Shown here: piece after piece, positions 1 to 32,662 of the stretch
How positions within the stretch are numbered: position 1 is the first letter of the stretch
How the letters are laid out: each line of letters begins with the position of its first letter
Program-made: the position numbers and the translations under genes
Notes under the pieces: generated by a model
The model's input: only the letters and a program-made list of their open reading frames with translations
Told to the model about the DNA's origin: nothing
The model's database searches: none
Assembly (NCBI GenBank): GCA_904063045.1
Contig: CAJFCJ010000126.1
Coordinates: forward strand, 1 to 32,662
Reading direction: 5' to 3'
Length of the DNA stretch: 32,662 nucleotides
Source of the DNA: Dimorphilus gyrociliatus
Lineage: Eukaryota > Animalia > Annelida

Positions 1-3000
1 AGTTGACTGGTTTGGTCATCTTGATACATCCCTTTCTTCTGTTGTATCTGAATCCCTTCTTGCATACACATCTGTATCCGAAAATGCCTCTTCTCATGCA
101 TCTTGCACCCTTGCATGGTTTCTTCAAACATGGGTTTGGTCTTGTGTATTTAACGCATCCCTTTTTACTGTTGTATCTGAATCCTCTCTACAGAGACATC
201 TGTAACCGAATCTTCCTCTTCTCACACATTTAGTTTTCTTACATGGGTCTTGGCACATGGATTATATTTCACACAGCCTTTAGCTCCGCGATAAATGAAT
301 CCTGGTCTACATAAACATTTGTATCCAGTGATACCTCTTCTGATGCATCTGGATTTTTTGCATGGTCTCTTCAAGCATGGGTTCTTTCCGTATTTAACGC
401 AGCCAATTTGGCGTTGTATCTGAATCCCTTCTTACATTGGCATCTGATTCTTCTACCCAAAGTCAAACATCTAGCATTTCCTATGCAAGAGTTCTTCTTG
501 CACAAGTTGACTGGTTTGGTCATCTTGATACATCCCTTTCTTCTGTTGTATCTGAATCCCTTCTTGCATACACATCTGTATCCGAAGAGTCCTCTTCTCA
601 TACATCTTGCACCCTTGCATGGTTTCTTCAAACATGGGTTTGGTCTTGTGTATTTAACGCATCCCTTTTTGCTATTGTATCTAAATCCTCTCTTGCACAA
701 ACATCTGTAACCAGAAAGACCTCTTCTCAAACATCTGGCTCCCTTGCATGGTCTCTTTGAACATGGTTCTTGTTGTATTTGATACAGCCTTTGTTCTGTT
801 GTAGAAGAGTCCCTTCTTGCAGACACATCTATATCCAGCAATACCTCTTCTGAGACATTTAGCTCCCTTACATGGTCTCTTCAAGCATGGGTTTGGTCTT
901 GTGTATTTCACACATCCCTTTTTGCCATAATATCTGAAGCCTGGTTTACAAAGACATCTATAACCGTTGAAACCTCTTCTCATACATCTGGCTCCCTTGC
1001 ATGGTTTCTTCAAGCATGGGTTGAAGTTGAATTTGACACAGCCTTTTTTGGCGTTGTATCTGAATCCTCTTCCACATTGACATCTGATTCTTCTGCCGAG
1101 AGATACACATCTAGCCTTTCCTTTGCAAGAATTCTTCTTGCACAATTGTGTAGCAGATCTCTTGCAAGATTTGGTTTTAGCATCAAGATGCTTCTTGGTG
1201 GACAAACACATCTATGACGTGAACCGATGTTGATACATCTTGCTTTTCCACATGGTTTTCTGGCACAAGGTCTGGACACACATCCAGCCTTTGCGCTATA
1301 ATATTGACTTCTCTTGCATACACATCTGTATCTAGTCAAACCACGACGGAAACATCTAGCTGGCTTTCTACATGGGTTGCTGTCACATGGGCTGGTCAAA
1401 GTTTTGACATCCCTTTGTTCTATAGTATTTTTGTCCAGATGGACAAATGCAACGGTATCCTTCTTCAAACCGAAACATCTAGCTCCACGTTTACATGGGT
1501 TCTTGGCACATAATTGGGCACTGTTACAAAGATGCAAGTGATAATGATATGTTCATTGTGGATTATTTGTATAATCCTTTAATGGTCTACTTACAGTCAG
1601 ATGTCTTTGGTGCAACTCTGAGAGAACTGGCCTTGTTTCCTGGTTTGATTACGTCGTATTCTCCTGTGGGAAACGGGCAATGGGATAACATATCCTCCCT
1701 TGTCGTACAATTCCCATGTTTTCTTGCCAATAACTTTCAATGATTCGACTCTATCTCCAAATTTCAATTCAGATAATTCTGGAGTATCCTTTTCAACGAC
1801 GATGAAATCTCCCTTGAAGTTTTCTTCATCGTACAAAATGATACCTTCTCTTGGCTCTTTCACTATCTTCGTACACAGCCTTTGGCTTCATCGTATTCGA
1901 AATCATCATCTTTGCAGGTACATTTGAAACCATTGGCGAGATCGGCGCATGTTGCTCCTGTTTTGCATGGGTTTGGTTTACAATTGTCAACGTCTTCTGG
2001 AGATCTCTGATAGATGAAACTTTGTCATCAGCACCGTATCTCTTCAAAGTTGGGTATTTTCCTTGCTTCAAGATGACCAATTCGTCTTCATATTTGTCGT
2101 CATCATAGAGTTGCCATCTCTGCCACCAAACACGATAGCGGATTCGGCAGTGTTATCACATCCGATTTGGGACAAATCTGGTACATCGTCCTTGACAACG
2201 CAACGTTTTCCCTTGAAGTTTTCTTCAGAGTAGAAAACGACTCCTTCCTTTGGATCTTCCTCTTTGTCATCATCGTCAGCATCATCATCGTCATCCAACG
2301 AAGAAGCAACACATCCCTTGAGTCTGTCGTATTCCATTCCTCGTCGTGGACATTTGCATTCGTAGAATTTTTCTGTGAGTTCACAAGTGGCTCCACCCTT
2401 GCAAATGTTGTTGATAGAACAGTAGTCTCTGAAGCATTCCTTTTCTCTCTTGATGAATCCCTTTTGCAGGTGAAACAGGAGTTCTTTTTGCAGGATTCTG
2501 TAAAGGTTATTAATGAATTTTATTGCAAATACAAAATAACCTGCTCCTACTATATTCTACTTACGTTCGCATGTCTTGACGGCAAGTTTAGGTTGAATTT
2601 TGACCAAATCTTCGAAATCTTCAATTTCCAATAAATGACTGTCGAATGGTTTGGAAGCAATGGCCTTCAATTCATCTTTGTCCAATCTCTTTCCAACACC
2701 AACAGCAAATGTTGTTACCTTTGCAGTTTAAGTGAATTAGCAGCAGCCAACGTGAGTCTCTTATTGTAAGATCTTCCATCTGTGACAACAATAGCAATGT
2801 GTGGTACATTCTTTCTTGCTGAAGCGAACGCTCTCTTAGCAGAAGTGAGAGCGCAGCTGTGTTGTTCCTCCTCTTGTGTATGGTGTGCTCAAGATGGCCT
2901 TAACAAGGCTCTGTTTGTTTGTGTACTTGGCAAAGGAGAATCTATTTCTAACGGAAGATGCGAATGTCATCAAACCAACACGAACATCTTTCTTTCCAAT

Positions 3001-6000
3001 CTTCATTTTGTTTACAACTTCGGCTGTGAATTTCTTGACTTCTTCAAAGTTATGAGCTCTGACAGATCCAGAAGCGTCCAAAACGAAAAGGATATCGGCT
3101 TCAGCGCCGCATCCATCTCCCATGTCTGGAACAGCAATACAACCCTTTCTCTTGTCATACACGTTTCCGATTGGGCAAGAGCATCTGTATCCACCACCAT
3201 AATTGATACATTTCGATCCTTCGACACAAATGTCTTTGTCTTCGCATTCATTGATGTCGATACATTTGTTGTTTTCTCTCTTGTATCCTCTTGGACATCT
3301 GATTGTTAGACCGTAATATGGTCTCAAAGAGCTGACCTTTGTTCTTGAAGACAAATTGATACAGTTTCCGGCGCGGGCGGCATAGGAGAAGTGTCTGAAG
3401 TATTTGCCGTTGTACAACAACCAGATTTTCTTTCCACTGACCATAACTGACTCGGCAGTGTTATCGAAAGGACCGAGGTTGGAGGAAGCAGAGTAGAATG
3501 TCTTTTGTTTTCCTTTACAGTCTCCATCATCGAAGAGAATGATTCTGTCACCACTTGGATTTTTGGTTTAGCACATCCGTTACGTGTGTAGACAAATCCA
3601 GCTGGACAAGCGCAAACGAAGCTGCTCTTTCTGTTCGAACACTTAGCATTTCCTCTACAACGTCCGGCTTTGAAGCAAGCATCGTAATCTGTGTGAAGAG
3701 AAAAAGTATGTATTGATTTTTGTCAAGTAGTGTTTGTGAATCGATCGCAATGTGACTCTCTCTATGACCTTCAATTATAACACTTACAGCATTTTCCATC
3801 AGATTCGTAATATCCTGGTCTGCATTTGATGCATTTCTTGCCGGATGGACATGCAGATTGACAGGCTCTTGAAGCAAGAGACAAATAGATACCACCCAAA
3901 GCATTGAAGTCGCTGGCGGCGAAAGAATGCTTTGCTGTTGGTTCGGAAGCCATGGCTTTCAATTCTCCAGCATCCAAGTTGTGTCCGATTCCAACAGAAA
4001 TCAATTTGACGGATTTGTCCTTAAGGATTTTCTGTAAAACATATAACGATAGAAATATATATTAATGCTAATGTCTATGAAGTGTTCCGAAAACTCACAT
4101 CAGCTTCTTGGATTGTTCTGCGGCGGTTGTTTGATCTTCCATCAGTGATTACAACAACGATTGTTGGAGTGTTCTTTCTGCTTTTTGGCAATACAGTCAT
4201 ACGAGTGAATTTCAAGGCTCTGTCAGTGGCAGTACCACCTCCTCTGTATCTGATTCTCAAAATGTTATCCAAGAGAGATTTCTTGCTGGAGTGTTTGTCC
4301 AAGTTGAATTCCAAGTAGGTTCTTGATTGGTATTTGACGACGGAAACACGCATGGCGTTTTTTCCAATAGTGAATTTAGAAGCAATGTTGTAGACAAATC
4401 TCTTCATTTTTTCAAAATTGTGAGATCCAACAGATCCGGAAGAATCCATGACGAAGACAATATCTGATTTGGAAGCACATCCTTCACCTAAATCGGGGAT
4501 CTTTTGACATCCATCTTGTGAGTCATACACTGTTCCTTGTGGACAAGCGCATCTGTATCCTCCTCTTTGGTTAACACATTTAGCTCCATGTTTGCATGGT
4601 TTAGTTTTACATTCGTCAATATCGACGCATTTCCCTTTCACCAATTTTGATCCTCTGCTGCATCTTGGAATGGAATATCTATTGCAAGAATTGTAAACAA
4701 CCTTCTTTCCATTCAACATGTAATAGGACATGCCGAATTTCTTTTGAATTGGGTATTTGACATTGTTGATCATGACCATCTTTTTGAGGTAGCTGCTCAT
4801 GGTTCCGATGCTACTGAAGAGGTTGAATGACGTCTTCTTGCCGTTGAGTGTGAAGTAGAATCTTCCCTTTTGTTTAACATCACGGATGACATTAATACGT
4901 TTCTTTCCATATTGGAAATAGTAGTTTGATCCTGATGGTCTCAAAGAGAAACTCTTGCCATTGATTCTCAATGATGCGGTTCTGATTGATGTTCTTGGTG
5001 GTGTTGTAAGACCGCCGAAAGAAAGTTTGACTTGGTAGTTTTTACCGTTAAAGTTCAATTTATATGTGTTTGGAGTAGTTGTTCTGTTCAAATAGAGGTT
5101 ATAGGTATAGCGGACTATTTGAATTTGTTAGGTGATTGAAACAGTAAGGTGACAAATTGTATTTACCTCATGAGACGGTATGTCTTCTTTGCAAAGTAAA
5201 AGATCCAATGACTTCCGGAACGTGTGAGGGAGAATGATTTTCCACCAATTCTGAGTGTAGGTGTAGCTCTTCTTTGGGCAACACAGGCTCTGTTTCTTGT
5301 GTAGTATTTTCTTCCTCCTCTGTAGAAGTAGTAAGATCTTCCGCTTCCTCTATTTAATGTGTATCTGTATTTGCTTCCCAAAAGATAACTGTAGGAAGAG
5401 AATGGTTTGTAATGAATTGTCGTGGTTATGTTTTGAAAGGGTTGGGTGGAATGATTTTACTAACGTTTTGCTTCCGAGACCGATTGGTTTCATATTTTTG
5501 TCTACGTAAACCTTGCGTTTGCTCTTTCCGTAAATGAAGTAATAGCGACTTCCCTCCAGGCGTAATTGAAATTTCATACCTCCGTAGTAGAGATATTTGA
5601 CGCTGCTCTTCATCATTGATGAGATCTGAGAAGAAGTGTACCAAACCTTTTTGTTGTTTTTCAAAATGTAGTATTTCAAGCCATTTTTGTATAGACGGTA
5701 TCTGACGCCACCGATCATAATGTATCTGATACTGGCACCAGTAGTCTTTCCACGTCTGTTCAAGTAGATGGCTTTTCCGTTGATGATGTAATAATAACGG
5801 CCGCTCTTTGATTTGCGGAGTTCGTATTTCTTACCACCAATTCTGATGTATCTCTTGTAACTGGAGCGTTTGATGATTGTTTTCTTTGTATAGGTGACTT
5901 TTCTGTTACCAAAAGAAACGTATCTCTTGAGAGCTCCAATTCTGAAGAACCATCTACTTCCTTCTTTTTGTAGAAGGTAACGTTTTCCCCCGTAGATGTA

Positions 6001-6409
6001 GTATCTGTGAAAGATGAAGTATAGGAATGAGAGGAAATCATTGAAGGTTTCACTCGATAAAGGGAATAATGGGATATGGAAGAGAGGCATTACTTTACCT
6101 TCTATAAGAAACAAAACGCTTCTGTGTTGTTTTCTTACTGGTAGAGTATTTCCAGTAATTAACATAGAAGGTTCTACTTCCGATTTTATAGAAGTATCTA
6201 CCATCTTTAGCTTTTTGGATCAAATATTTATTTGTTCCATTTCTGAAGTAAGTTTTCGATTCAAATGTCTTGTAATATTTTGTTGGTCTAATGGTTTTTT
6301 TCAGGATAGAGCGTCCAACCGTTTCAGAGTCTGTTGGACTTTTCAATATAAGAGCTCCAGCTGTTGCTGCTAAGAGCACGATAAGGCAAAGCCGAGGTAT
6401 CGGCAGCAT
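1..6409 (-). CDS. Second type A copy, 3' part off the window edge; about 20 single-base deletions in 1-3560, probably consensus errors
   Basis: Exons 6409-6099, 6004-5465, 5388-5167, 5083-4099, 4031-3788, 3688-2565, 2497-1595, 1520-<1. Carries type-A diagnostic residues (IVLL and KKTIRP at the N-terminus; RPNPCLKKPCKGARCM in EGF repeat 8) and the same upstream flank as the copy at 22321-31204. Offset to that copy drifts from 24776 at base 1 to 24796 by ~3600. Confidence 0.75.
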
Positions 6410-9099: not shown

Positions 9100-9150
9100 T
9101 GTAAAAACTTGAGTTTTAAGTTTCCTTAGTAACTTTTACCTTGATTCTGA

Positions 9151-10873: not shown

Positions 10874-13800
10874 TTAGGCAGTTGGCTTTGCGGGACAAGT
10901 GCGTGGAACACAGAATTCAGGACTATTATCTTGGGATTCACAAAGATCTGGACGACCGCATTGTGTACATTTATTTCTGTTCTTTCCACCACATTGACAT
11001 CCATTGTTTTGACAACAAGCACAATCCTTTGTTGCATCATCAGCGCAAGGACATCCACCCTTAGATTTGGTCCATGGATCTCTTACTTCTTCTTCGCGAG
11101 GATCACCACATCTATCAGGATATCCGCATTGCACACATTGTTGATGGTTAGATTTGCTGCATTGACAACCTCCTGGATAACAACAAGCACAATCCATTCT
11201 ACTCTTGTCGAAATAACATTGACATCCACCAGGACTCTTTGTCCAGATATCCTTCTTAATGACATTGACCAATTTTTCATCTTCAGCCTTTCTGAAGCCG
11301 TACAATTCAGCTCTAAGACCTACACAGTTGTTGTTTGATTTAACTGGCACAATTCTTACAAATTTAGCCTCGACTGGTTTACCATAGTATCTATGGAGAC
11401 AATGATGTTTCCACGAATCATCATCTTTGTTTCCCTTCCACACCTTCACCTTTTCGGCATCGTCTTTATCCTTCAATGTTTCAAAGCTATTACCATCCTT
11501 AGATACTTCGAGAGTGTACTTCTTAACATAACAATCTTCTCCCTTGGCACCCTTTGTTCCGATACCGTGAACTCCCAACACATCACCAATGTCTACTGTA
11601 AGTGTTGGTCTCTCATCAGATGGAGAAGGCTTCCATCCAGACAATTTTGGTCTGCTGTTCTGGGCTTCGAATCCTGGTTGTTCAGTGCTACCGACAATAT
11701 CACCATCTTCAATGATTTTACTGTGCATACCCAAAGGACGAGGCTTGGGTTTTGCTGGAGGATCGGGAACAAAGTATTTTTCATCTTCATTATCGCTATC
11801 ATCATCTTGTTGACCTTGAGGTGGACGTCTATCAGGGAATGAAATGACATCAGTGGTTGTTTCAAGAGTAGTAGATGGAGTAGTGGTAGGAGGAGTGGTA
11901 GGAGCTTCAGTAGTTGGTTGTTCTGGTGTGGTTGGTTGTTCTGGTGTTGTTGGTTGTTCTGGTGTGGTTGGTTCTTCAGGAGTAGTTGGTTGTTCTGGTG
12001 TTGTTGGTTGTTCTGGTGTGGTTGGTTGTTCTGGTGTTGTTGGTTGTTCTGGTGTGGTTGGTTGTTCTGGTGTGGTTGGTTCTTCAGGAGTAGTTGGTTG
12101 TTCTGGTGTTGTTGGTTGTTCTGGTGTGGTTGGTTGTTCTGGTGTGGTTGGTTCTTCAGGAGTAGTTGGTTGTTCTGGTGTGGTAGGCGCTTCTGTGGTT
12201 GGAGCTTCTGTGGTTGGAGCTTCTGTGGTTGGAGCTTCTGTGGTTGGAGCTTCTGTGGTTGGAGCTTCTGTGGTTGGAGCTTCAGTTGTTGGAGCTTCTG
12301 TTGTTGGAACTTCGGTTGTTGGTGGAGTACCAGTAGATGGAGTTGTTGGTGGTTGATTTGTTGTGACTGGGATAATCTTAACACATTTGTTGTTTCTTCT
12401 GTTGAATCTGAAGCCTTTCTTGCATACGCATCTGTATCTGAAACCTCTGGCAACACATCTGGCAACTTTTCCGCATGGTCTTCTACGGCAGGGGTTGAAT
12501 TTCATACATCCTCTCTTGCGGTTGTAGAAGAATCCCTTTTTGCAGACGCATCTGTATCCAGAACGGCCTCTTCTTTGACATCTAGATTTCAAACATGGCT
12601 TCTTGGCACATGGATTGACCTTGCCGTATTTCAAGCATCCTCTTCTTGGTTGATAGTAGAATCCCTTCTTACACAAACAGGTGAATCCGAAAGGACCACG
12701 TCTCACACATCTAGCGCTCTTACATGGTCTTTTTGCACATGGGTTTGGTCTTGTGTATTTAACACATCCCTTTCTGCTGTTGTATCTGAATCCTCTCTTG
12801 CACAAGCATCTGTATCCGAAGAGTCCTCTTCTCACACATCTAGCTCCCTTGCATGGTCTCTTCAAACATGGATTGCGTCTGTTCAATTTGATACAACCTC
12901 TTCTTCTGTTGTAGACGAATCCCTTTTTACAAAGACATCTGTATCCAAACAATCCTTTTCTTACACATTTGCTTCCTTTGCATGGTCTTCTCAAACATGG
13001 GTTGCCCTTGATACATCCAAGTCGGCTATTATAGAATAATCCCTTCTTGCAAGTACATTTGTAACCGAATTTTCCACGTGTTGAGCATTTAGCTCCCTTG
13101 CATGGTCTTCTCAAGCATGGGTTGTATTTAACACATCCCTTTCTTGAGTTGTATCTGAATCCTCTCTTACAGACGCATCTGTAACCGAAGAGTCCTCTTC
13201 TCATGCATCTTGTTCCTTTGCATGGTTTCTTCAAGCATGGGTTCTTTCCGTATTTAACGCAGCCAGATTTGGCGTTGTATCTGAATCCCTTCTTACATTG
13301 GCATCTGATTCTTCTGCCCAAAGTCAAACATCTAGCATTTCCTCTGCAAGAGTTCTTCTTGCACAAGTTGACTGGTTTGGTCATCTTGATACATCCCTTT
13401 CTTCTGTTGTATCTGAATCCCTTCTTGCATACACATCTGTATCCGAAAATGCCTCTTCTCATGCATCTTGCACCCTTGCATGGTTTCTTCAAACATGGGT
13501 TTGGTCTTGTGTATTTAACGCATCCCTTTTTGCTGTTGTATCTGAATCCTGTCTTACAGAGACATCTGTAACCGAATCTTCCTCTTCTCACACATTTAGT
13601 TTTCTTACATGGGTTCTTGGCACATGGATTATATTTCACACAGCCTTTAGCTCCGCGATAAATGAATCCTGGTCTACATAAACATTTGTATCCAGTGATA
13701 CCTCTTCTGATGCATCTGGATTTTTTGCATGGTCTCTTCAAGCATGGGTTCTTTCCGTATTTAACGCAGCCAGATTTGGCGTTGTATCTGAATCCCTTCT

Positions 13801-16800
13801 TACATTGGCATCTGATTCTTCTACCCAAAGTCAAACATCTAGCATTTCCTATGCAAGAGTTCTTCTTGCACAAGTTGACTGGTTTGGTCATCTTGATACA
13901 TCCCTTTCTTCTGTTGTATCTGAATCCCTTCTTGCATACACATCTGTATCCGAAGAGTCCTCTTCTGAGACATTTAGCTCCCTTACATGGTCTCTTCAAG
14001 CATGGGTCTGGTCTTGTGTATTTAACGCATCCCTTTTTGCTGTTGTATCTGAATCCTCTCTTGCACAAACATCTGTAACCGGAAAGTCCTCGTCTCAAAC
14101 ATCTGGCTCCCTTGCATGGTCTCTTTGAACATGGGTTCTTGTTGTATTTGATACAGCCTTTTGTTCTGTTGTAGAAGAGTCCCTTCTTGCAGACACATCT
14201 ATATCCAGCAATACCTCTTCTGAGACATTTAGCTCCCTTACATGGTCTCTTCAAGCATGGGTTTGGTCTTGTGTATTTCACACATCCCTTTTTGCCATAA
14301 TATCTGAAGCCTGGTTTACAAAGACATCTATAACCGTTGAAACCTCTTCTCATACATCTGGCTCCCTTGCATGGTTTCTTCAAGCATGGGTTGAAGTTGA
14401 ATTTGACACAGCCTTTTTTGGCGTTGTATCTGAATCCTCTTCCACATTGACATCTGATTCTTCTGCCGAGAGATACACATCTAGCCTTTCCTTTGCAAGA
14501 ATTCTTCTTGCACAATTGTGTAGCAGATCTCTTGCAAGATTTGGTTTTAGCATCAAAGATGCTTCTTGGTGGACAAACACATCTATGACGTGAACCGATG
14601 TTGATACATCTTGCTTTTCCACATGGTTTTCTGGCACAAGGTCTGGACACACATCCAGCCTTTGCGCTATAATATTGACTTCTCTTGCATACACATCTGT
14701 ATCTAGTCAAACCACGACGGAAACATCTAGCTGGCTTTCTACATGGGTTGCTGTCACATGGGCTGGTCAAAAGTTTTTGACATCCCTTTGTTCTATAGTA
14801 TTTTTGTCCAGATGGACAAATGCAACGGTATCCCTTCTTCAAACCGAAACATCTAGCTCCACGTTTACATGGGTTCTTGGCACAATAATTGGGCACTGTT
14901 ACAAAGATGCAAGTGATAATGATATGTTCATTGTGGATTATTTGTATAATCCTTTAATGGTCTACTTACAGTCAGATGTCTTTGGTGCAACTCTGAGAGA
15001 ACTGGCCTTGTTTCCTGGTTTGATTACGTCGTATTCTCCTGGTGGGAAACGGGCAATGGGATCAACATATCCTCCCTTGTCGTACAATTCCCATGTTTTC
15101 TTGCCAATAACTTTCAATGATTCGACTCTATCTCCAAATTTCAATTCAGATAATTCTGGAGTATCCTTTTCAACGACGATGAAATCTCCCTTGAAGTTTT
15201 CTTCATCGTACAAAATGATACCTTCTCTTGGCTCTTTCACTATCTTTCGTACACAGCCTTTGGCTTCATCGTATTCGAAATCATCATCTTTGCAGGTACA
15301 TTTGAAACCATTGGCGAGATCGGCGCATGTTGCTCCTGTTTTGCATGGGTTTGGTTTACAATTGTCAACGTCTTCTGGGAGATCTCTGATAGATGAAACT
15401 TTGTCATCAGCACCGTATCTCTTCAAAGTTGGGTATTTTCCTTGCTTCAAGATGACCAATTCGTCTTCATATTTGTCGTCATCATAGAGTTGCCATCTCT
15501 TGCCACCAAACACGATAGCGGATTCGGCAGTGTTATCACATCCGATTTGGGACAAATCTGGTACATCGTCCTTGACAACGCAACGTTTTCCCTTGAAGTT
15601 TTCTTCAGAGTAGAAAACGACTCCTTCCTTTGGATCTTCCTCTTTGTCATCATCGTCAGCATCATCATCGTCATCCAACGAAGAAGCAACACATCCCTTG
15701 AGTCTGTCGTATTCCATTCCTCGTCGTGGACATTTGCATTCGTAGAATTTTTCTGTGAGTTCACAAGTGGCTCCACCCTTGCAAATGTTGTTGATAGAAC
15801 AGTAGTCTCTGAAGCATTCCTTTTCTCTCTTGATGAATCCCTTTTTGCAGGTGAAACAGGAGTTCTTTTTGCAGGATTCTGTAAAGGTTATTAATGAATT
15901 TTATTGCAAATACAAAATAACCTGCTCCTACTATATTCTACTTACGTTCGCATGTCTTGACGGCAAGTTTAGGTTGAATTTTGACCAAATCTTCGAAATC
16001 TTCAATTTCCAATAAATGACTGTCGAATGGTTTGGAAGCAATGGCCTTCAATTCATCTTTGTCCAATCTCTTTCCAACACCAACAGCAAATGTTGTTACC
16101 TTTGCAGTTTTAAGTGAATTAGCAGCAGCCAACGTGAGTCTCTTATTGTAAGATCTTCCATCTGTGACAACAATAGCAATGTGTGGTACATTCTTTCTTG
16201 CTGAAGCGAACGCTCTCTTAGCAGAAGTGAGAGCGGCAGCTGTGTTGGTTCCTCCTCTTGTGTATGGTGTGCTCAAGATGGCCTTAACAAGGCTCTGTTT
16301 GTTTGTGTACTTGGCAAAGGAGAATCTATTTCTAACGGAAGATGCGAATGTCATCAAACCAACACGAACATCTTTCTTTCCAATCTTCATTTTGTTTACA
16401 ACTTCGGCTGTGAATTTCTTGACTTCTTCAAAGTTATGAGCTCTGACAGATCCAGAAGCGTCCAAAACGAAAAGGATATCGGCTTCAGCGCCGCATCCAT
16501 CTCCCATGTCTGGAACAGCAATACAACCCTTTCTCTTGTCATACACGTTTCCGATTGGGCAAGAGCATCTGTATCCACCACCATAATTGATACATTTCGA
16601 TCCTTCGACACAAATGTCTTTGTCTTCGCATTCATTGATGTCGATACATTTGTTGTTTTCTCTCTTGTATCCTCTTGGACATCTGATTGTTAGACCGTAA
16701 TATGGTCTCAAAGAGCTGACCTTTGTTCTTGAAGACAAATTGATACAGTTTCCGGCGCGGGCGGCATAGGAGAAGTGTCTGAAGTATTTGCCGTTGTACA

Positions 16801-19794
16801 ACAACCAGATTTTCTTTCCACTGACCATAACTGACTCGGCAGTGTTATCGAAAGGACCGAGGTTGGAGGAAGCAGAGTAGAATGTCTTTTGTTTTCCTTT
16901 ACAGTCTCCATCATCGAAGAGAATGATTCTGTCACCACTTGGGATTTTTGGTTTAGCACATCCGTTACGTGTGTAGACAAATCCAGCTGGACAAGCGCAA
17001 ACGAAGCTGCTCTTTCTGTTCGAACACTTAGCATTTCCTCTACAACGTCCGGCTTTGAAGCAAGCATCGTAATCTGTGTGAAGAGAAAAAGTATGTATTG
17101 ATTTTTGTCAAGTAGTGTTTGTGAATCGATCGCAATGTGACTCTCTCTATGACCTTCAATTATAACACTTACAGCATTTTCCATCAGATTCGTAATATCC
17201 TGGTCTGCATTTGATGCATTTCTTGCCGGATGGACATGCAGATTGACAGGCTCTTGAAGCAAGAGACAAATAGATACCACCCAAAGCATTGAAGTCGCTG
17301 GCGGCGAAAGAATGCTTTGCTGTTGGTTCGGAAGCCATGGCTTTCAATTCTCCAGCATCCAAGTTGTGTCCGATTCCAACAGAAATCAATTTGACGGATT
17401 TGTCCTTAAGGATTTTCTGTAAAACATATAACGATAGAAATATATATTAATGCTAATGTCTATGAAGTGTTCCGAAAACTCACATCAGCTTCTTGGATTG
17501 TTCTGCGGCGGTTGTTTGATCTTCCATCAGTGATTACAACAACGATTGTTGGAGTGTTCTTTCTGCTTTTTGGCAATACAGTCATACGAGTGAATTTCAA
17601 GGCTCTGTCAGTGGCAGTACCACCTCCTCTGTATCTGATTCTCAAAATGTTATCCAAGAGAGATTTCTTGCTGGAGTGTTTGTCCAAGTTGAATTCCAAG
17701 TAGGTTCTTGATTGGTATTTGACGACGGAAACACGCATGGCGTTTTTTCCAATAGTGAATTTAGAAGCAATGTTGTAGACAAATCTCTTCATTTTTTCAA
17801 AATTGTGAGATCCAACAGATCCGGAAGAATCCATGACGAAGACAATATCTGATTTGGAAGCACATCCTTCACCTAAATCGGGGATCTTTTGACATCCATC
17901 TTGTGAGTCATACACTGTTCCTTGTGGACAAGCGCATCTGTATCCTCCTCTTTGGTTAACACATTTAGCTCCATGTTTGCATGGTTTAGTTTTACATTCG
18001 TCAATATCGACGCATTTCCCTTTCACCAATTTTGATCCTCTGCTGCATCTTGGAATGGAATATCTATTGCAAGAATTGTAAACAACCTTCTTTCCATTCA
18101 ACATGTAATAGGACATGCCGAATTTCTTTTGAATTGGGTATTTGACATTGTTGATCATGACCATCTTTTTGAGGTAGCTGCTCATGGTTCCGATGCTACT
18201 GAAGAGGTTGAATGACGTCTTCTTGCCGTTGAGTGTGAAGTAGAATCTTCCCTTTTGTTTAACATCACGGATGACATTAATACGTTTCTTTCCATATTGG
18301 AAATAGTAGTTTGATCCTGATGGTCTCAAAGAGAAACTCTTGCCATTGATTCTCAATGATGCGGTTCTGATTGATGTTCTTGGTGGTGTTGTAAGACCGC
18401 CGAAAGAAAGTTTGACTTGGTAGTTTTTACCGTTAAAGTTCAATTTATATGTGTTTGGAGTAGTTGTTCTGTTCAAATAGAGGTTATAGGTATAGCGGAC
18501 TATTTGAATTTGTTAGGTGATTGAAACAGTAAGGTGACAAATTGTATTTACCTCATGAGACGGTATGTCTTCTTTGCAAAGTAAAAGATCCAATGACTTC
18601 CGGAACGTGTGAGGGAGAATGATTTTCCACCAATTCTGAGTGTAGGTGTAGCTCTTCTTTGGGCAACACAGGCTCTGTTTCTTGTGTAGTATTTTCTTCC
18701 TCCTCTGTAGAAGTAGTAAGATCTTCCGCTTCCTCTATTTAATGTGTATCTGTATTTGCTTCCCAAAAGATAACTGTAGGAAGAGAATGGTTTGTAATGA
18801 ATTGTCGTGGTTATGTTTTGAAAGGGTTGGGTGGAATGATTTTACTAACGTTTTGCTTCCGAGACCGATTGGTTTCATATTTTTGTCTACGTAAACCTTG
18901 CGTTTGCTCTTTCCGTAAATGAAGTAATAGCGACTTCCCTCCAGGCGTAATTGAAATTTCATACCTCCGTAGTAGAGATATTTGACGCTGCTCTTCATCA
19001 TTGATGAGATCTGAGAAGAAGTGTACCAAACCTTTTTGTTGTTTTTCAAAATGTAGTATTTCAAGCCATTTTTGTATAGACGGTATCTGACGCCACCGAT
19101 CATAATGTATCTGATACTGGCACCAGTAGTCTTTCCACGTCTGTTCAAGTAGATGGCTTTTCCGTTGATGATGTAATAATAACGGCCGCTCTTTGATTTG
19201 CGGAGTTCGTATTTCTTACCACCAATTCTGATGTATCTCTTGTAACTGGAGCGTTTGATGATTGTTTTCTTTGTATAGGTGACTTTTCTGTTACCAAAAG
19301 AAACGTATCTCTTGAGAGCTCCAATTCTGAAGAACCATCTACTTCCTTCTTTTTGTAGAAGGTAACGTTTTCCCCCGTAGATGTAGTATCTGTGAAAGAT
19401 GAAGTATAGGAATGAGAGGAAATCATTGAAGGTTTCACTCGATAAAGGGAATAATGGGATATGGAAGAGAGGCATTACTTTACCTTCTATAAGAAACAAA
19501 ACGCTTCTGTGTTGTTTTCTTACTGGTAGAGTATTTCCAGTAATTAACATAGAAGGTTCTACTTCCGATTTTATAGAAGTATCTACCATCTTTAGCTTTT
19601 TGGATCAAATATTTATTTGTTCCATTTCTGAAGTAAGTTTTCGATTCAAATGTCTTGTAATATTTTGTTGGTCTAATGGCTTTTTTCAGGATAGAGCGTC
19701 CAACCGTTTCAGAGTCTGTTGGACTTTTCAATATAAGAGCTCCAGCTGTTGCTGCTAAGAGCAAGATAAGGCAAAGCCGAGGTATCGGCAACAT
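10874..19794 (-). CDS. Large secreted mosaic protein, paralog type B (intact, 2,786 aa after splicing): SP, Y/K/R/G-rich repeats, EGF/vWA/betagamma-crystallin modules, 20 basic EGF-like repeats, PTTE array, F5/8C, Cys-rich tail
   Basis: Coding exons inferred by hand (minus strand): 19794-19484, 19389-18850, 18773-18552, 18468-17484, 17416-17173, 17073-15946, 15878-14970, 14895-10874. All 7 introns are GT..AG with matching phases, total 8361 nt = 2786 aa + TAA, no internal stop. Hydrophobic N-terminus MLPIPRLCLILLLAATAGA. Recognisable motifs: DIDEC/DINEC (EGF-Ca), DSSGS/DASGS (vWA MIDAS), FYSEENFKG..DNTAES (betagamma-crystallin), PLGM..LRAELYG (F5/8C). Confidence 0.9.
10940..11243 (-). other. 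Two tandem 10-Cys repeats at the C-terminus (family not recognised); type A copy at +11447
   Basis: WTKSPGGCQCYFDKSRMDCACCYPGGCQCSKSNHQQCVQCGYPDRCG and WTKSKGGCPCADDATKDCACCQNNGCQCGGKNRNKCTQCGRPDLCE. Confidence 0.8.
11297..11737 (-). other. F5/8 type C (discoidin) domain; type A copy at 22744-23184
   Basis: PLGMHSKIIEDGDI..SGWKP..LTVDIG..GIGTKG..YVKKYTLEVSKDG..WKGNKD..AKFVRIVP..LRAELYG matches the FA58C pattern. Confidence 0.9.
11845..12360 (-). repeat. Coding VNTR, type B: 15-nt PTTE(A/V) units plus 15 x 18-nt PTTPE(Q/E) units; mucin-like stalk
   Basis: Tandem ggttggagcttctgt and ggttggttgttctggtgt units on the plus strand; in-frame translation. Confidence 0.95.
12380..14895 (-). repeat. 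Array of 20 Lys/Arg-rich EGF-like repeats (type B); includes a 507-nt, 4-unit internal duplication
   Basis: Consensus NPCLKRPCKGARCxRRGLFGYRCxCKKGFRYNxRKGCVKY, 6 Cys per unit, 20 units counted; agccagattt recurs at 13261 and 13768. Confidence 0.93.
14985..15225 (-). other. betagamma-crystallin-like domain 3
   Basis: IILYDEENFKG..GDRVESLKV..WELYDKGGY..PGEY..GNKASSLR. Confidence 0.85.
15381..15624 (-). other. betagamma-crystallin-like domain 2 (acidic)
   Basis: VVFYSEENFKG..CDNTAESAIV..WQLYDDDKYED..GKY..DDKVSSIR: two Greek-key signatures, each with an N/D-N/D-x-x-S/T-S-like motif. Confidence 0.85.
15950..16480 (-). other. vWA domain 2; type A copy at +11411
   Basis: DILFVLDASGSV, RVGLMTFA, GGTNTAAAL, IAIVVTDGRS, TFAVGVG; preceded by EGF-Ca DINECEDKDICVEGSKCINYGGGYRCSC. 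Confidence 0.92.
16703..16933 (-). other. betagamma-crystallin-like domain 1 (degenerate, basic second half)
   Basis: IILFDDGDCKG..FDNTAESVMV..WLLYNGKYF..TKVSSLRP; the first half is visible only after splicing intron 5. Confidence 0.7.
17245..17850 (-). other. vWA domain 1 (interrupted by phase-0 intron 17417-17483); type A copy at +11411
   Basis: DIVFVMDSSGSVG (MIDAS DxSxS), GGGTAT, IVVVITDGRS, KLISVGIG; preceded by EGF-Ca DIDECKTKPCKHGAKCVNQRGGYRCAC. Confidence 0.92.
18071..19735 (-). other. Tyr/Lys/Arg/Gly-rich N-terminal region, about 10 degenerate ~30-40 aa repeats (type B coordinates; spans introns 1-3)
   Basis: Recurring YIRIGGKKYEL, YIYGGKRYLL, YIMIGGVRYRL, YLYYGGMKFQL, LRIGGKSFSL, LRINGKSFSL, each followed by GS/GR-YY[FY]; only one Cys in ~470 aa. 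Confidence 0.7.
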
Positions 19795-22320: not shown

Positions 22321-25300
22321 TTAATTAAGTGGTTTAGCAGGGCATGTGCGTGGAACACAGAATTCAGGACTATTATCTTGGGATTCACAAAGATCTGGAC
22401 GACCGCATTGTGTACATTTATTTCTGTTCTTTCCACCACATTGACATCCATTGTTTTGACAACAAGCACAATCCTTTGTTGCATCATCAGCGCAAGGACA
22501 TCCACCCTTAGATTTGGTCCATGGATCTCTTACTTCTTCTTCGCGAGGATCACCACATCTATCAGGATATCCGCATTGCACACATTGTTGATGGTTAGAT
22601 TTGCTGCATTGACAACCTCCTGGATAACAACAAGCACAATCCATTCTACTCTTGTCGAAATAACATTGACATCCACCAGGACTCTTTGTCCAGATATCCT
22701 TCTTAATGACATTGACCAATTTTTCATCTTCAGCCTTTCTGAAGCCGTACAATTCAGCTCTAAGACCTACACAGTTGTTGTTTGATTTAACTGGCACAAT
22801 TCTTACAAATTTAGCCTCGACTGGTTTACCATAGTATCTATGGAGACAATGATGTTTCCACGAATCATCATCTTTGTTTCCCTTCCACACCTTCACCTTT
22901 TCGGCATCGTCTTTATCCTTCAATGTTTCAAAGCTATTACCATCCTTAGATACTTCGAGAGTGTACTTCTTAACATAACAATCTTCTCCCTTGGCACCCT
23001 TTGTTCCGATACCGTGAACTCCCAACACATCACCAATGTCTACTGTAAGTGTTGGTCTCTCATCAGATGGAGAAGGCTTCCATCCAGACAATTTTGGTCT
23101 GCTGTTCTGGGCTTCGAATCCTGGTTGTTCAGTGCTACCGACAATATCACCATCTTCAATGATTTTACTGTGCATACCCAAAGGACGAGGCTTGGGTTTT
23201 GCTGGAGGATCGGGAACAAAGTATTTTTCATCTTCATTATCGCTATCATCATCTTGTTGACCTTGAGGTGGACGTCTATCAGGGAATGAAATGACATCAG
23301 TGGTTGTTTCAAGAGTAGTAGATGGAGTAGTGGTAGGAGGAGTGGTAGGAGCTTCAGTAGTTGGTTGTTCTGGTGTGGTTGGTTGTTCTGGTGTTGTTGG
23401 TTGTTCTGGTGTGGTTGGTTCTTCAGGAGTAGTTGGTTGTTCTGGTGTTGTTGGTTGTTCTGGTGTGGTTGGTTGTTCTGGTGTTGTTGGTTGTTCTGGT
23501 GTGGTTGGTTGTTCTGGTGTGGTTGGTTCTTCAGGAGTAGTTGGTTGTTCTGGTGTGGTTGGTTCTTCAGGAGTAGTTGGTTGTTCTGGTGTGGTAGGCG
23601 CTTCTGTGGTTGGAGCTTCTGTGGTTGGAGCTTCTGTGGTTGGAGCTTCTGTGGTTGGAGCTTCTGTGGTTGGAGCTTCTGTGGTTGGAGCTTCAGTTGT
23701 TGGAGCTTCTGTTGTTGGAACTTCGGTTGTTGGTGGAGTACCAGTAGATGGAGTTGTTGGTGGTTGATTTGTTGTGACTGGGATAATCTTAACACATTTG
23801 TTGTTTCTTCTGTTGAATCTGAAGCCTTTCTTGCATACGCATCTGTATCTGAAACCTCTGGCAACACATCTGGCAACTTTTCCGCATGGTCTTCTACGGC
23901 AGGGGTTGAATTTCATACATCCTCTCTTGCGGTTGTAGAAGAATCCCTTTTTGCAGACGCATCTGTATCCAGAACGGCCTCTTCTTTGACATCTAGATTT
24001 CAAACATGGCTTCTTGGCACATGGATTGACCTTGCCGTATTTCAAGCATCCTCTTCTTGGTTGATAGTAGAATCCCTTCTTACACAAACAGGTGAATCCG
24101 AAAGGACCACGTCTCACACATCTAGCGCTCTTACATGGTCTTTTTGCACATGGGTTTGGTCTTGTGTATTTAACACATCCCTTTCTGCTGTTGTATCTGA
24201 ATCCTCTCTTGCACAAGCATCTGTATCCGAAGAGTCCTCTTCTCACACATCTAGCTCCCTTGCATGGTCTCTTCAAACATGGATTGCGTCTGTTCAATTT
24301 GATACAACCTCTTCTTCTGTTGTAGACGAATCCCTTTTTACAAAGACATCTGTATCCAAACAATCCTTTTCTTACACATTTGCTTCCTTTGCATGGTCTT
24401 CTCAAACATGGGTTGCCCTTGATACATCCAAGTCGGCTATTATAGAATAATCCCTTCTTGCAAGTACATTTGTAACCGAATTTTCCACGTGTTGAGCATT
24501 TAGCTCCCTTGCATGGTCTTCTCAAGCATGGGTTGTATTTAACACATCCCTTTCTTGAGTTGTATCTGAATCCTCTCTTACAGACGCATCTGTAACCGAA
24601 GAGTCCTCTTCTCATGCATCTTGTTCCTTTGCATGGTTTCTTCAAGCATGGGTTCTTTCCGTATTTAACGCAGCCAGATTTGGCGTTGTATCTGAATCCC
24701 TTCTTACATTGGCATCTGATTCTTCTACCCAAAGTCAAACATCTAGCATTTCCTATGCAAGAGTTCTTCTTGCACAAGTTGACTGGTTTGGTCATCTTGA
24801 TACATCCCTTTCTTCTGTTGTATCTGAATCCCTTCTTGCATACACATCTGTATCCGAAAATGCCTCTTCTCATGCATCTTGCACCCTTGCATGGTTTCTT
24901 CAAACATGGGTTTGGTCTTGTGTATTTAACGCATCCCTTTTTACTGTTGTATCTGAATCCTCTCTTACAGAGACATCTGTAACCGAATCTTCCTCTTCTC
25001 ACACATTTAGTTTTCTTACATGGGTTCTTGGCACATGGATTATATTTCACACAGCCTTTAGCTCCGCGATAAATGAATCCTGGTCTACATAAACATTTGT
25101 ATCCAGTGATACCTCTTCTGATGCATCTGGATTTTTTGCATGGTCTCTTCAAGCATGGGTTCTTTCCGTATTTAACGCAGCCAGATTTGGCGTTGTATCT
25201 GAATCCCTTCTTACATTGGCATCTGATTCTTCTACCCAAAGTCAAACATCTAGCATTTCCTATGCAAGAGTTCTTCTTGCACAAGTTGACTGGTTTGGTC

Positions 25301-28300
25301 ATCTTGATACATCCCTTTCTTCTGTTGTATCTGAATCCCTTCTTGCATACACATCTGTATCCGAAGAGTCCTCTTCTCATACATCTTGCACCCTTGCATG
25401 GTTTCTTCAAACATGGGTTTGGTCTTGTGTATTTAACGCATCCCTTTTTGCTATTGTATCTAAATCCTCTCTTGCACAAACATCTGTAACCAGAAAGACC
25501 TCTTCTCAAACATCTGGCTCCCTTGCATGGTCTCTTTGAACATGGGTTCTTGTTGTATTTGATACAGCCTTTTGTTCTGTTGTAGAAGAGTCCCTTCTTG
25601 CAGACACATCTATATCCAGCAATACCTCTTCTGAGACATTTAGCTCCCTTACATGGTCTCTTCAAGCATGGGTTTGGTCTTGTGTATTTCACACATCCCT
25701 TTTTGCCATAATATCTGAAGCCTGGTTTACAAAGACATCTATAACCGTTGAAACCTCTTCTCATACATCTGGCTCCCTTGCATGGTTTCTTCAAGCATGG
25801 GTTGAAGTTGAATTTGACACAGCCTTTTTTGGCGTTGTATCTGAATCCTCTTCCACATTGACATCTGATTCTTCTGCCGAGAGATACACATCTAGCCTTT
25901 CCTTTGCAAGAATTCTTCTTGCACAATTGTGTAGCAGATCTCTTGCAAGATTTGGTTTTAGCATCAAAGATGCTTCTTGGTGGACAAACACATCTATGAC
26001 GTGAACCGATGTTGATACATCTTGCTTTTCCACATGGTTTTCTGGCACAAGGTCTGGACACACATCCAGCCTTTGCGCTATAATATTGACTTCTCTTGCA
26101 TACACATCTGTATCTAGTCAAACCACGACGGAAACATCTAGCTGGCTTTCTACATGGGTTGCTGTCACATGGGCTGGTCAAAAGTTTTTGACATCCCTTT
26201 GTTCTATAGTATTTTTGTCCAGATGGACAAATGCAACGGTATCCCTTCTTCAAACCGAAACATCTAGCTCCACGTTTACATGGGTTCTTGGCACAATAAT
26301 TGGGCACTGTTACAAAGATGCAAGTGATAATGATATGTTCATTGTGGATTATTTGTATAATCCTTTAATGGTCTACTTACAGTCAGATGTCTTTGGTGCA
26401 ACTCTGAGAGAACTGGCCTTGTTTCCTGGTTTGATTACGTCGTATTCTCCTGGTGGGAAACGGGCAATGGGATCAACATATCCTCCCTTGTCGTACAATT
26501 CCCATGTTTTCTTGCCAATAACTTTCAATGATTCGACTCTATCTCCAAATTTCAATTCAGATAATTCTGGAGTATCCTTTTCAACGACGATGAAATCTCC
26601 CTTGAAGTTTTCTTCATCGTACAAAATGATACCTTCTCTTGGCTCTTTCACTATCTTTCGTACACAGCCTTTGGCTTCATCGTATTCGAAATCATCATCT
26701 TTGCAGGTACATTTGAAACCATTGGCGAGATCGGCGCATGTTGCTCCTGTTTTGCATGGGTTTGGTTTACAATTGTCAACGTCTTCTGGGAGATCTCTGA
26801 TAGATGAAACTTTGTCATCAGCACCGTATCTCTTCAAAGTTGGGTATTTTCCTTGCTTCAAGATGACCAATTCGTCTTCATATTTGTCGTCATCATAGAG
26901 TTGCCATCTCTTGCCACCAAACACGATAGCGGATTCGGCAGTGTTATCACATCCGATTTGGGACAAATCTGGTACATCGTCCTTGACAACGCAACGTTTT
27001 CCCTTGAAGTTTTCTTCAGAGTAGAAAACGACTCCTTCCTTTGGATCTTCCTCTTTGTCATCATCGTCAGCATCATCATCGTCATCCAACGAAGAAGCAA
27101 CACATCCCTTGAGTCTGTCGTATTCCATTCCTCGTCGTGGACATTTGCATTCGTAGAATTTTTCTGTGAGTTCACAAGTGGCTCCACCCTTGCAAATGTT
27201 GTTGATAGAACAGTAGTCTCTGAAGCATTCCTTTTCTCTCTTGATGAATCCCTTTTTGCAGGTGAAACAGGAGTTCTTTTTGCAGGATTCTGTAAAGGTT
27301 ATTAATGAATTTTATTGCAAATACAAAATAACCTGCTCCTACTATATTCTACTTACGTTCGCATGTCTTGACGGCAAGTTTAGGTTGAATTTTGACCAAA
27401 TCTTCGAAATCTTCAATTTCCAATAAATGACTGTCGAATGGTTTGGAAGCAATGGCCTTCAATTCATCTTTGTCCAATCTCTTTCCAACACCAACAGCAA
27501 ATGTTGTTACCTTTGCAGTTTTAAGTGAATTAGCAGCAGCCAACGTGAGTCTCTTATTGTAAGATCTTCCATCTGTGACAACAATAGCAATGTGTGGTAC
27601 ATTCTTTCTTGCTGAAGCGAACGCTCTCTTAGCAGAAGTGAGAGCGGCAGCTGTGTTGGTTCCTCCTCTTGTGTATGGTGTGCTCAAGATGGCCTTAACA
27701 AGGCTCTGTTTGTTTGTGTACTTGGCAAAGGAGAATCTATTTCTAACGGAAGATGCGAATGTCATCAAACCAACACGAACATCTTTCTTTCCAATCTTCA
27801 TTTTGTTTACAACTTCGGCTGTGAATTTCTTGACTTCTTCAAAGTTATGAGCTCTGACAGATCCAGAAGCGTCCAAAACGAAAAGGATATCGGCTTCAGC
27901 GCCGCATCCATCTCCCATGTCTGGAACAGCAATACAACCCTTTCTCTTGTCATACACGTTTCCGATTGGGCAAGAGCATCTGTATCCACCACCATAATTG
28001 ATACATTTCGATCCTTCGACACAAATGTCTTTGTCTTCGCATTCATTGATGTCGATACATTTGTTGTTTTCTCTCTTGTATCCTCTTGGACATCTGATTG
28101 TTAGACCGTAATATGGTCTCAAAGAGCTGACCTTTGTTCTTGAAGACAAATTGATACAGTTTCCGGCGCGGGCGGCATAGGAGAAGTGTCTGAAGTATTT
28201 GCCGTTGTACAACAACCAGATTTTCTTTCCACTGACCATAACTGACTCGGCAGTGTTATCGAAAGGACCGAGGTTGGAGGAAGCAGAGTAGAATGTCTTT

Positions 28301-31204: not shown

Positions 31205-32662
31205 ATTTGTTTGCAGGTTGTTGTTATCTAAGTTACCTGAAATGATGAAAATTTTTAAGTTAATTCTGCTTTTGCTTTTTCGTTATACATACCGGAGTCG
31301 AAAGTATATTTCGGCTCTGATGTTTTTACTCGATATCGTTTTGGTCGAGTGACAAAGATTTTTGAACTTTCTGTGATTTATATAGTTTTTTAATATTTGT
31401 TTAACATGTTCGTTAGCACTCCTTTCTCCATATTTTTTTAATTGATTAGAAAGATGTGGCGTCTATTTTTGAACATTTTACATCTGTGTCTAAAAATAGA
31501 GATTCAATTTTATATACTCTTTTAAAGCAGTTTGTGAAAGGTCATAGTCTAATAGACTTTTTGTTCACAGTGAAATAGTTTTTTAGTAAAGGTTTGTTTT
31601 TTGTTACCCTTTTTCTTTACGTGTGATGTTTGTTGCTATGACTGTCTTTCTTATGTTTATTGTAATGATTTTGCAATGTTCTTTTTTACGTCGAAAATTA
31701 TATTATTTCCTTTTTGTGTTGAAATATAGATTGTTTTAGAAACTCCTTTGTTCAGTTAATGATCTTTTTGATAAGTTCTGTATCATAACAGCCTTTCATT
31801 GATACTAGATGTTGATCAAGCCTATTAAGAATTGGTTTTTATTTAGAAATATTTATCTTGAATTAGCAGACGTATTAGAAACGGGAAAATTTGGAAGAAT
31901 ATGTTGAAATTCTTAAGAAGTTTGAAGGGAACATTACATTGTTCACATGATATTATCGAGTTTTTGTCCAATAAAGCAATGTGATATATGCAATAACCGT
32001 AATTTGAGATAGCTGTAAACTTAATGGCAGATTAGCGTATATAACTCATGCTTAACTGTCTCGAAATGAGCTACATTTACAAGTGCAGACGTTATTGGAT
32101 GAAATTAGAAAGTTTACTCCTTTAAGTAAGTTTTCAACTACATAAAATACTATTAAGAGTCATTAAAGATTTTAATTACTAGTATTTAGTCGTTAAACCG
32201 TTGATAACATCAGTATTATAAAAATTAGTAACTTGTGACTGTATGTGAAAAACTTAGGTTCGAATACTCTCAAGATAATACGTTTTTTCTTTTTGTTTTC
32301 ATACTATGATTTACTACTTAACACTATTATTTAATTTAATGGTTAATAGTGATTCTGATTTCTCAAGTATTATAACAAATAAACTCTTTATAATAAAATT
32401 ATCTTAACTGTAAATTTGCATATTTTCTACTTTTTCGCAGAGATAAGGCGCTTTTTAAAACTAAATGTTAATACTAAAGCAAACATTGGTATGAGAAGAC
32501 ATTAGCCTAATCCTTTTTGAGAATTGTCCATGTTTTCTCAACTTTGCTCTCCATTATGGTGAACTTGTGCTCATTATACACGATTACTAGACAATATTCT
32601 ACAGGAGATTTTTTTGTTCTTATTGCTAAAATGCTTTCAAGAAATCGCCTATTCTTTTATTT
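24777..32662 (+). repeat. Right copy of ~7.9-kb direct repeat (matches 1-7872)
   Basis: ORF-track proteins recur at +24796 (4075/28871, 5163/29959, 5350/30146, 6095/30891); about 6 single-base deletions accumulate over the last 1.5 kb. Confidence 0.95.
31344..31384 (-). promoter_or_regulatory. Core promoter of type A (repeat copy)
   Basis: Identical to 6549-6589. Confidence 0.6.

Follow-up and report, generated by a model that had tools for sequence, protein, structure and literature searches.

The 32,662-nucleotide window analyzed here, the forward strand of one whole contig from the annelid Dimorphilus gyrociliatus, carries on its minus strand (positions 19794 to 10874) a gene for a giant secreted mosaic protein. 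Its eight exons belong to one transcript with a single frame of 2,786 codons, and the gene is one of at least five tandem copies. The predicted product combines tyrosine/lysine-rich repeats, vWA, βγ-crystallin, EGF and discoidin domains, a mucin-type stalk and a cysteine-rich tail. With somewhat more confidence than doubt, we interpret it as a strongly polycationic multidomain scaffold that would act as a cohesive cross-linker of externally secreted material, such as gliding mucus, adhesive-gland secretion or a cocoon glued to its substrate.

RNA contigs join eight exons into one reading frame

An RNA contig of 4,764 nucleotides (run X1, record 1, a coral metatranscriptome) is colinear with positions 19686 to 14363 of the window at about 97% identity. 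It skips seven stretches of 67–99 nucleotides, each bounded by CT..AC on the forward strand, which corresponds to GT..AG on the minus strand (Table 1). Since this single contig crosses all seven GT..AG introns, the eight exons form one reading frame: every one of them is open in the phase set by the RNA joints, and their lengths total 8,361 nucleotides, that is, 2,786 codons plus a stop. A preliminary description of this DNA, made from the letters alone, had proposed one spliced chain of about 2,790 residues and had raised the question of whether transcripts place the exons in separate genes; the X1 contig joins them, and the length is nearly the same. RNA contigs from runs X2 (100% identity) and X3 (more than 99%) contain subsets of the X1 splice joints, and the spliced X3 contigs reach a per-contig word depth of approximately 4,700–13,800, a quantity that is a poor measure of expression. 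In the six-frame translation, the gene appears as a 1,340-residue open exon at 10874-14896 together with upstream open reading frames (ORFs) that match vWA, βγ-crystallin and EGF domains. An AATAAA hexamer lies about 150 nucleotides downstream of the stop codon. The data agree with what is published for D. gyrociliatus, namely a median intron of 66 bp, a compact genome and a long-read assembly (PMC7854359).

As a separate observation, the X1 RNA differs from the window by many A>G and G>A changes at its 97% identity; the coral system from which the sample came probably harbors a close relative or strain of the worm.

Domain architecture and composition

All searches and structure predictions were run per exon rather than on the joined protein, and compositions were calculated from pooled exon pieces. 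Pfam matches and composition confirmed every item of the preliminary inventory, which comprised a signal peptide, Tyr/Lys-rich repeats, two vWA domains, three βγ-crystallin domains, some 25 EGF-like units, a mucin stalk, a discoidin domain and a Cys-rich tail (Table 1). Overall, the chain contains 12% lysine, 9% arginine, 7% cysteine and 5.5% tyrosine. Hydrophobic 19-residue segments are confined to residues 1–26 of the whole protein, and a scan of the chain found no second one that could form a transmembrane helix; because the sole hydrophobic segment is the signal peptide, the protein has no membrane anchor.

Both vWA domains have a complete metal ion-dependent adhesion site (MIDAS; DxSxS, T and D) and are of the collagen VI/integrin-I type. 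For the second, the closest solved chains are collagen VI alpha-3, the mussel protein PTMP1 (second best, 4.4e-27) and integrin I-domains (alpha-M/X). The discoidin domain is closest to neuropilin b1, the C domains of factors V and VIII, and lactadherin. EGF units, of which the whole chain has 24 by a strict cysteine pattern and about 25 by cysteine count, are concentrated in a long rod, whose 838 residues are 31% lysine plus arginine, 6% tyrosine and 14% cysteine and include just three acidic residues. The per-exon Pfam scans detected no VWD, C8 or TIL domain in any exon, neither N-terminal vWD assemblies nor a CTCK cystine knot, which are features of gel-forming mucins and vWF, and no collagen or coiled-coil assembly module.

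Table 1. Features of the gene under study (copy B) and further copies of the array. Positions are those of the window unless a contig is named.
Feature	Position	Strand	Remarks
Exons 1-8	19794-19484, 19389-18850, 18773-18552, 18468-17484, 17416-17173, 17073-15946, 15878-14970, 14895-10874	(-)
Introns (RNA-based)	19390-19483, 18774-18849, 18469-18551, 17417-17483, 17074-17172, 15879-15945, 14896-14969	(-)
Start codon and signal peptide	19726..19794	(-)	Exon 1, residues 1 to ~23; ATG at 19794; exon open
Tyr/Lys-rich repeat region	18063..19725	(-)	Rest of exon 1, exons 2-3, exon 4 residues 1-135; interrupted by introns 19390-19483, 18774-18849, 18469-18551
Calcium-binding EGF 1	17892..18008	(-)	DIDEC motif; EGF_CA 1e-07
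vWA domain 1	17267..17846	(-)	MIDAS DSSGS intact; VWA 1.3e-31 (exon 4), 3e-06 (exon 5); split by intron 17417-17483
Cys-rich linker and EGF unit	16958..17266	(-)	Exon 5 end/exon 6 start; EGF_3/hEGF at exon 6 residues 7-33; EGF Cys pattern at residues 4-38; intron 17074-17172
βγ-crystallin domain 1	16703..16930	(-)	Divergent; Crystall 27.6 bits alone (cut-off 25), 23.5 bits within whole exon; BLASTP 1e-06 to exon 7 crystallins
Calcium-binding EGF 2	16523..16642	(-)	DINEC motif; EGF_CA 5e-09
vWA domain 2	15974..16480	(-)	MIDAS DASGS intact; VWA 1.1e-43
Exon 7 (EGF, poly-Asp linker, βγ-crystallin 2, EGF, βγ-crystallin 3)	14970..15878	(-)	Crystall 7e-28 with two stretches; EGF 1.5e-4
EGF in exon 7	15691-15801	(-)
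Poly-Asp acidic linker in exon 7	15628-15681	(-)
βγ-crystallin 2	15370-15621	(-)	DDKVSS Ca-site motif
Second EGF in exon 7	15253-15360	(-)
βγ-crystallin 3	14977-15237	(-)
Polycationic EGF rod	12380..14895	(-)	~20 EGF units in 838 aa; EGF 9.6e-40
Mucin-type stalk	11849..12379	(-)	177 aa; 9 x TTEAP + 15 x PTTPE[Q/E]; 66% T+S+P; acidic
Acidic linker ahead of discoidin domain	11639-11848	(-)
Discoidin (F5/8 type C) domain	11294..11638	(-)	F5_F8_type_C 1.8e-17
C-terminal tail	10874..11293	(-)	Two tandem ~50-aa modules of 10 Cys each, short 2-Cys end; stop codon 10874-10876
Copy A	1..6409	(-)	5' 6.4 kb only, cut by contig end; 99.4% identical to B; 20 small indels, breaking at least the vWA2 ORF
Copy C	22321..31205	(-)	Exons 2-7 identical to B; 1-nt deletion at codon 7 (31180-31190)
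Copy D	G000:C27:655551-662881		Last 7.3 kb of 663-kb contig C27, which ends inside the EGF exon
Copy E, 3' part	G000:C284:1-4774		Opens 9.7-kb contig C284, followed by unique DNA

A related gene indicates purifying selection

A search with exon 2 returned one protein, P0175, at 80% identity. The genomic contig that encodes it (L014; 8,330 nucleotides; SRR23372231) carries an orthologue from a related species and preserves the order of exons and domains as far as the beginning of the EGF rod. Compared exon by exon with the window, it is 56–89% identical, with ratios of nonsynonymous to synonymous substitution rates (dN/dS) of 0.06–0.24 at a saturated dS of 0.9–2.4. The Tyr/Lys repeat exon 2 is 79% identical (dN/dS 0.06), with nearly all tyrosines invariant, exon 7 is 83% identical (dN/dS 0.06), and the part of the EGF rod present on L014 keeps its charge (29% lysine plus arginine, three acidic residues in 293). 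The low dN/dS values, the invariant tyrosines and the retained rod charge together indicate that the whole chain, including its odd composition, is under purifying selection.

Word searches and an HMMER search with exon 7 revealed no architecture-level relative elsewhere, in a library that also missed the window's own protein. The exhaustive HMMER search with exon 7 retrieved EGF arrays of the Notch or SVEP1 kind and small proteins with several crystallin domains, none of them orthologous; its library missed the 83%-identical, 367-residue Logan product of L014, so that claims of absent relatives are soft. For the EGF rod, a word-seeded search found no close relative in its size class: with 450 residues as query, its yield was limited to three generic EGF proteins, all weak matches and none of them a foot protein, by a method that misses distant kin. 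These results agree with the earlier statement that the combination does not correspond to a named protein, which is a weak statement given the holes in the library. The protein thus far appears to be restricted to dinophilid annelids, a soft conclusion from the sequence searches.

The Tyr/Lys-rich region as a folded repeat domain

The N-terminal region of about 467–480 residues consists of approximately 11 units of some 30 residues, seven of them clean and about four degenerate, and contains 23% lysine plus arginine, 12% tyrosine and nine acidic residues. Four N-terminal pieces matched no Pfam family even at E<=10, and a sequence search of the PDB gave no match to the repeat. An AlphaFold2 (AF2) model of exon 2, built from a two-row alignment, predicted each unit as a four-stranded antiparallel β-meander, with a predicted local distance difference test score (pLDDT) of about 75–88 per unit and 73.5 overall; the units are joined by disordered linkers, and the predicted template modeling score (pTM) of the whole is 0.30.

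Structure searches with this model did not place the fold. Foldseek against the PDB returned nothing at E<=0.001, the best hit of VIA-align wide had a non-significant Z of 4.0, the ESM-Atlas shape search reached template modeling (TM) scores of at most 0.37, and the ESM-Atlas feature search gave no usable match. The weak Foldseek rows, at E ~0.01 and TM <0.2, are mostly choline-, glucan- and glycan-binding β-hairpin repeat proteins, and this likeness may be taken as a weak lead, not a result. Assignment of the N-terminal units to the CW_binding_1/CROPs β-hairpin repeats was considered and rejected, with no Pfam match at E<=10 and no significant fold match.

The preliminary description had counted these repeats among the parts of a possible adhesive. 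Their richness in tyrosine and lysine stands; a low-complexity character of the kind that carries 3,4-dihydroxyphenylalanine (DOPA) does not, given the dN/dS of 0.06 and the β-meander model. As modeled, the region is a conserved folded repeat domain, unlike the low-complexity DOPA sequence of mussels.

A shared C-terminal cassette

The Cys-rich tail has no Pfam match and no sequence match in the PDB, and AF2 run on a five-row alignment gave no usable model (pLDDT 38.6). It is 59% identical to the tail of a metagenomic protein, P0001, and 47% identical to those of LCCL-repeat proteins from amphioxus. In P0001, the entire C-terminal cassette of discoidin domain and twin 10-Cys tail recurs, with 46% identity across 93% of the query region, and the upstream part of P0001 has the order cbEGF-ShK-VWD-C8-TIL (cbEGF, calcium-binding EGF). 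In the amphioxus proteins (P0003), the twin 10-Cys tail also stands at the C-terminus and is the only part shared. The twin module follows the pattern W-T-x-S … C-x-C … D-C-x-C-C … G-C-x-C … C-x-Q-C-G … C (window 10877-11293, P0001:1225-1367 and P0003:1055-1181), and its sequence distribution suggests an unnamed domain at the C-terminus of secreted mosaic proteins.

A tandem array homogenized over the coding sequence

The window, contig C126 (32.7 kb) of a 77.9-Mb assembly with 349 contigs, holds copies A, B (the gene under study) and C, which are 99.3–99.7% identical and separated by two alternating spacers; copies D and E lie at the ends of two other contigs (Table 1). Copy C differs from B in exon 8 by 10 substitutions and by a mucin stalk that is 12 residues (36 nucleotides) shorter. 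In copy A, the vWA2 ORF (window 2836-3444) spans 202 residues, compared with 296 in copy B. The differences of A, D and E from B are mostly 18–30 single-base indels. Since the assembly is based on PacBio reads (PMC7854359), these indels may be errors, or else some copies may really have decayed.

Identity between the copies starts exactly at the ATG (5' edges 19795/6410/31206) and ends nine nucleotides before the stop codon (3' edges 10883/22330), and the last two residues differ between copies B and C. The upstream flanks are of three unrelated kinds, one shared by A and C, another in B and a third in D (L011:1551), and the downstream flanks are also of three kinds, namely spacer 1, spacer 2 and the unique flank on C284. 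With these distinct flanks, the tandem array is real and comprises five genes or more, and it breaks the assembly; five is a lower bound, as the array falls in an assembly gap. The unrelated upstream DNA places one protein behind different putative promoters. The preliminary description had suggested that the protein is made in bulk, which fits an array of at least five copies homogenized over the coding sequence.

It is improbable that the array is partly an artifact, in which no more than one or two copies are real and appear as several through, for instance, haplotigs or wrongly joined long reads. The window is a small stand-alone contig of a PacBio-based assembly (PMC7854359), and the 18–30 one-base indels of A, D and E are typical of unpolished long-read ends. 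However, the upstream (A/C, B and D) and downstream flanks are of three different kinds each, B and C are distinguished by real substitutions and by the 36-nucleotide change in repeat length, and both spacers are joined to genes within a single contig.

Several further observations concern the surroundings of the array. The spacer between B and A contains a small separate gene (window 8055-9017, minus strand), and the same spacer restarts at 31206-32662. It codes for a signal peptide, for three EGF units rich in Tyr and for a run of some 30 mucin repeats (TTEVP/TTELP) that closes like the stalk of the large gene (…TTDVI); these sequence features suggest a mini-paralogue interspersed among the array genes. 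An exon that pairs kringle and discoidin domains, an uncommon combination, lies about 8 kb upstream of the array (L013:1320-1985 (-), corresponding to G000:C27 ~647.3-648.0 kb). A larger adhesive gene cluster at the locus was considered and dropped, as the neighbors of the array are unrelated (MFS and kringle-discoidin genes upstream, Hsp20 downstream).

Proposed function and alternatives

The sequence supports a non-anchored, multivalent and very cationic secreted binder with putative metal-dependent adhesion sites, a discoidin domain of a sugar- or lipid-binding type and a probably glycosylated spacer. In the mechanism that we propose, the cationic EGF rod and the Tyr/Lys β-meanders would use charge and aromatic contacts to bind polyanions, for example conditioned surfaces and the acidic or sulfated glycans of mucins. 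With the calcium and magnesium of seawater, the vWA domains, the calcium-binding EGF units and the βγ-crystallin domains would bind protein partners, and the discoidin domain would bind sugar or lipid. The O-glycosylated stalk would serve as a spacer, the twin 10-Cys tail may link chains together, and the gene array could provide the dosage for bulk secretion. The worm glides on cilia and is not sessile, its cocoons are glued to surfaces (PMC8667735), and cocoons are laid repeatedly (PMC5101659). For the biochemistry of dinophilid glands or cocoons, the literature found consists of morphology and culture notes only.

A bolder combination of these ideas, which we consider unlikely as a whole, would make the Tyr/Lys β-meander a new polyanion- or glycan-binding family. 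The protein would be chiefly responsible for cohesion in the temporary adhesive or the cocoon of dinophilids, and no such component of a meiofaunal annelid would have been defined molecularly before it. Gene conversion would then keep the array identical from ATG to stop behind three unrelated promoters, which would let different glands or stages secrete the same protein.

Several points weigh against a role as cohesive cross-linker. The RNA support consists of bulk contigs only, so that any tissue or material named for the protein is presumptive. Because the fold of the Tyr/Lys repeat escaped classification, its ligand is a guess. Only copy B is fully intact in the assembly; codon 7 of copy C carries a frameshift, and indels are numerous in A, D and E. 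Internal extracellular matrix is built from these domain types too, as in collagen VI and matrilins. Finally, curing by conversion of tyrosine to DOPA is, softly, not supported: a six-frame search of the 77.9-Mb genome with the tyrosinase hidden Markov model (PF00264) gave no candidates, a soft negative because the controls were silent too, and exons are short. By the same method, haem peroxidase (PF03098) was found at at least four loci. A published survey of tyrosinases leaves this species out.

The domain types lead to the best-surviving alternative, namely that the protein belongs to the internal extracellular matrix. In the manner of matrilins or collagen VI, it would then link basement membranes, cuticle or muscle attachments rather than form part of a glue or cocoon. 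The vWA-EGF-vWA arrangement with intact MIDAS, its best matches to collagen VI and integrin I-domains among solved chains, and a discoidin domain nearest to those of neuropilin and factors V/VIII are all consistent with this. We nevertheless regard it as rather unlikely: it would be unusual for an internal matrix protein to have a mucin stalk, to carry a net charge in the hundreds and to be encoded by a homogenized multi-copy array, the Pfam scans found no collagen or coiled-coil assembly module, and the depth of the RNA contigs, a weak measure, looks very high.

A role in mucosal defense is less probable still. Here, a polycationic agglutinin or antimicrobial scaffold in mucus or cocoon would clump microbes through its charge, its discoidin domain and lectin-like repeats, which accords with the extreme cationic charge, with the discoidin domain and with repeats that possibly resemble carbohydrate-binding β-hairpins (the Foldseek rows at E ~0.01). 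Immune effector genes also show amplification in arrays. However, the fold matches are not significant, and a chain of 2,786 residues with vWA/EGF scaffolding points to a structural role.

A mussel-type permanent glue, cured through hydroxylated tyrosines as in Mfp-2, is very improbable: it would accord with the Tyr/Lys-rich EGF array, which resembles Mfp-2 (PMC12817120), and with the 12% tyrosine of the N-terminal repeats, but the lack of a detected tyrosinase domain weakens it (a soft negative), the tyrosines are predicted to lie in conserved β-strands of a folded repeat, the word search, which misses distant kin, gave no homology to Mfp-2, and the animal glides and is not sessile (PMC8667735).

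Significance of a proposed cohesive scaffold

If the protein is a cohesive secreted scaffold, its kind is known, since giant multimodular cohesive secretion proteins occur in marine invertebrates. What appears to be new, on the sequence evidence, is the architecture, the embedding of the polycation in EGF units, the Tyr/Lys β-repeat and the homogenization of the array exactly over the coding sequence. Few temporary or cocoon adhesives have been characterized outside mussels, barnacles, sea stars and flatworms, and they are lineage-specific giants built from the same small set of modules. The worm gene would add an annelid example in which the charge resides within folded EGF units (three acidic residues in 838) rather than in disordered K/R tracts, and the conserved, unclassified Tyr/Lys β-repeat would be a second unusual design feature. 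The array, with its unrelated flanks, offers a clean case for concerted evolution under dosage selection. If the absence of tyrosinase is confirmed, the worm would be an annelid without the usual enzyme for DOPA or melanin chemistry. The host is small and culturable, and an in situ hybridization protocol is published, which makes the function directly testable.

Comparison with known adhesive and matrix proteins

The preliminary description had drawn three comparisons from the literature, with Mfp-2 as an EGF array, PTMP1 as a protein of two vWA domains and Sfp1 as a multimodular protein, and all three are correct (PMC12817120); PTMP1 even appears as the second-best solved match to vWA2. Sea star Sfp1, the metagenomic P0001 and the worm protein are alike in being large, Cys-rich multimodular chains with calcium-binding EGF and discoidin domains, and the features shared with the Sfp1 and Mlig-ap1 type are present, namely a signal peptide, 7% cysteine, a discoidin domain and two cbEGF units. 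Sfp1 and P0001 differ in having vWD-C8(-TIL), which is missing from the worm protein, and in lacking its Tyr/Lys repeats, vWA and βγ-crystallin domains and cationic rod.

PTMP1 and collagen VI resemble the worm protein in their two vWA domains of the collagen-VI or integrin type with MIDAS. PTMP1, however, has 454 residues and consists of two vWA domains only, whereas these are two of about 45 modules in the worm protein. Mfp-2, sea star Sfp3/4 and scallop Sbp9 (PMC12817120) share tandem Lys/Tyr-rich EGF units with a high cysteine content and have a bulk cohesive role. This feature is represented by the approximately 20 tandem EGF units of the rod (838 residues, 31% lysine plus arginine, 6% tyrosine). 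Compared with Mfp-2, the worm protein is about six times longer and has many other domains, and the kinship retrieved is that of the EGF fold only.

The best working analogue appears to be Mlig-ap1 of a flatworm, a cohesive component of a temporary adhesive in which K/R-rich regions are combined with a lectin, with vWD and with 17 calcium-binding EGF units (PMC6410801). The differences lie in the modules and in the placement of the charge. Mlig-ap1 has a C-type lectin and vWD-C8-TIL, whereas the worm protein has vWA, βγ-crystallin and discoidin domains and neither vWD nor C-lectin; its charge resides in folded EGF units and the new β-repeat, that of Mlig-ap1 in low-complexity KR regions. In overall design, the two agree: each is a secreted giant with an extremely high Lys/Arg content, has a sugar-binding module alongside a long series of EGF units, and is lineage-restricted without named homologues. 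The polyanion heparin blocks attachment based on Mlig-ap1 (PMC6410801), which makes the function of that protein dependent on charge, and the worm protein is likewise very cationic.

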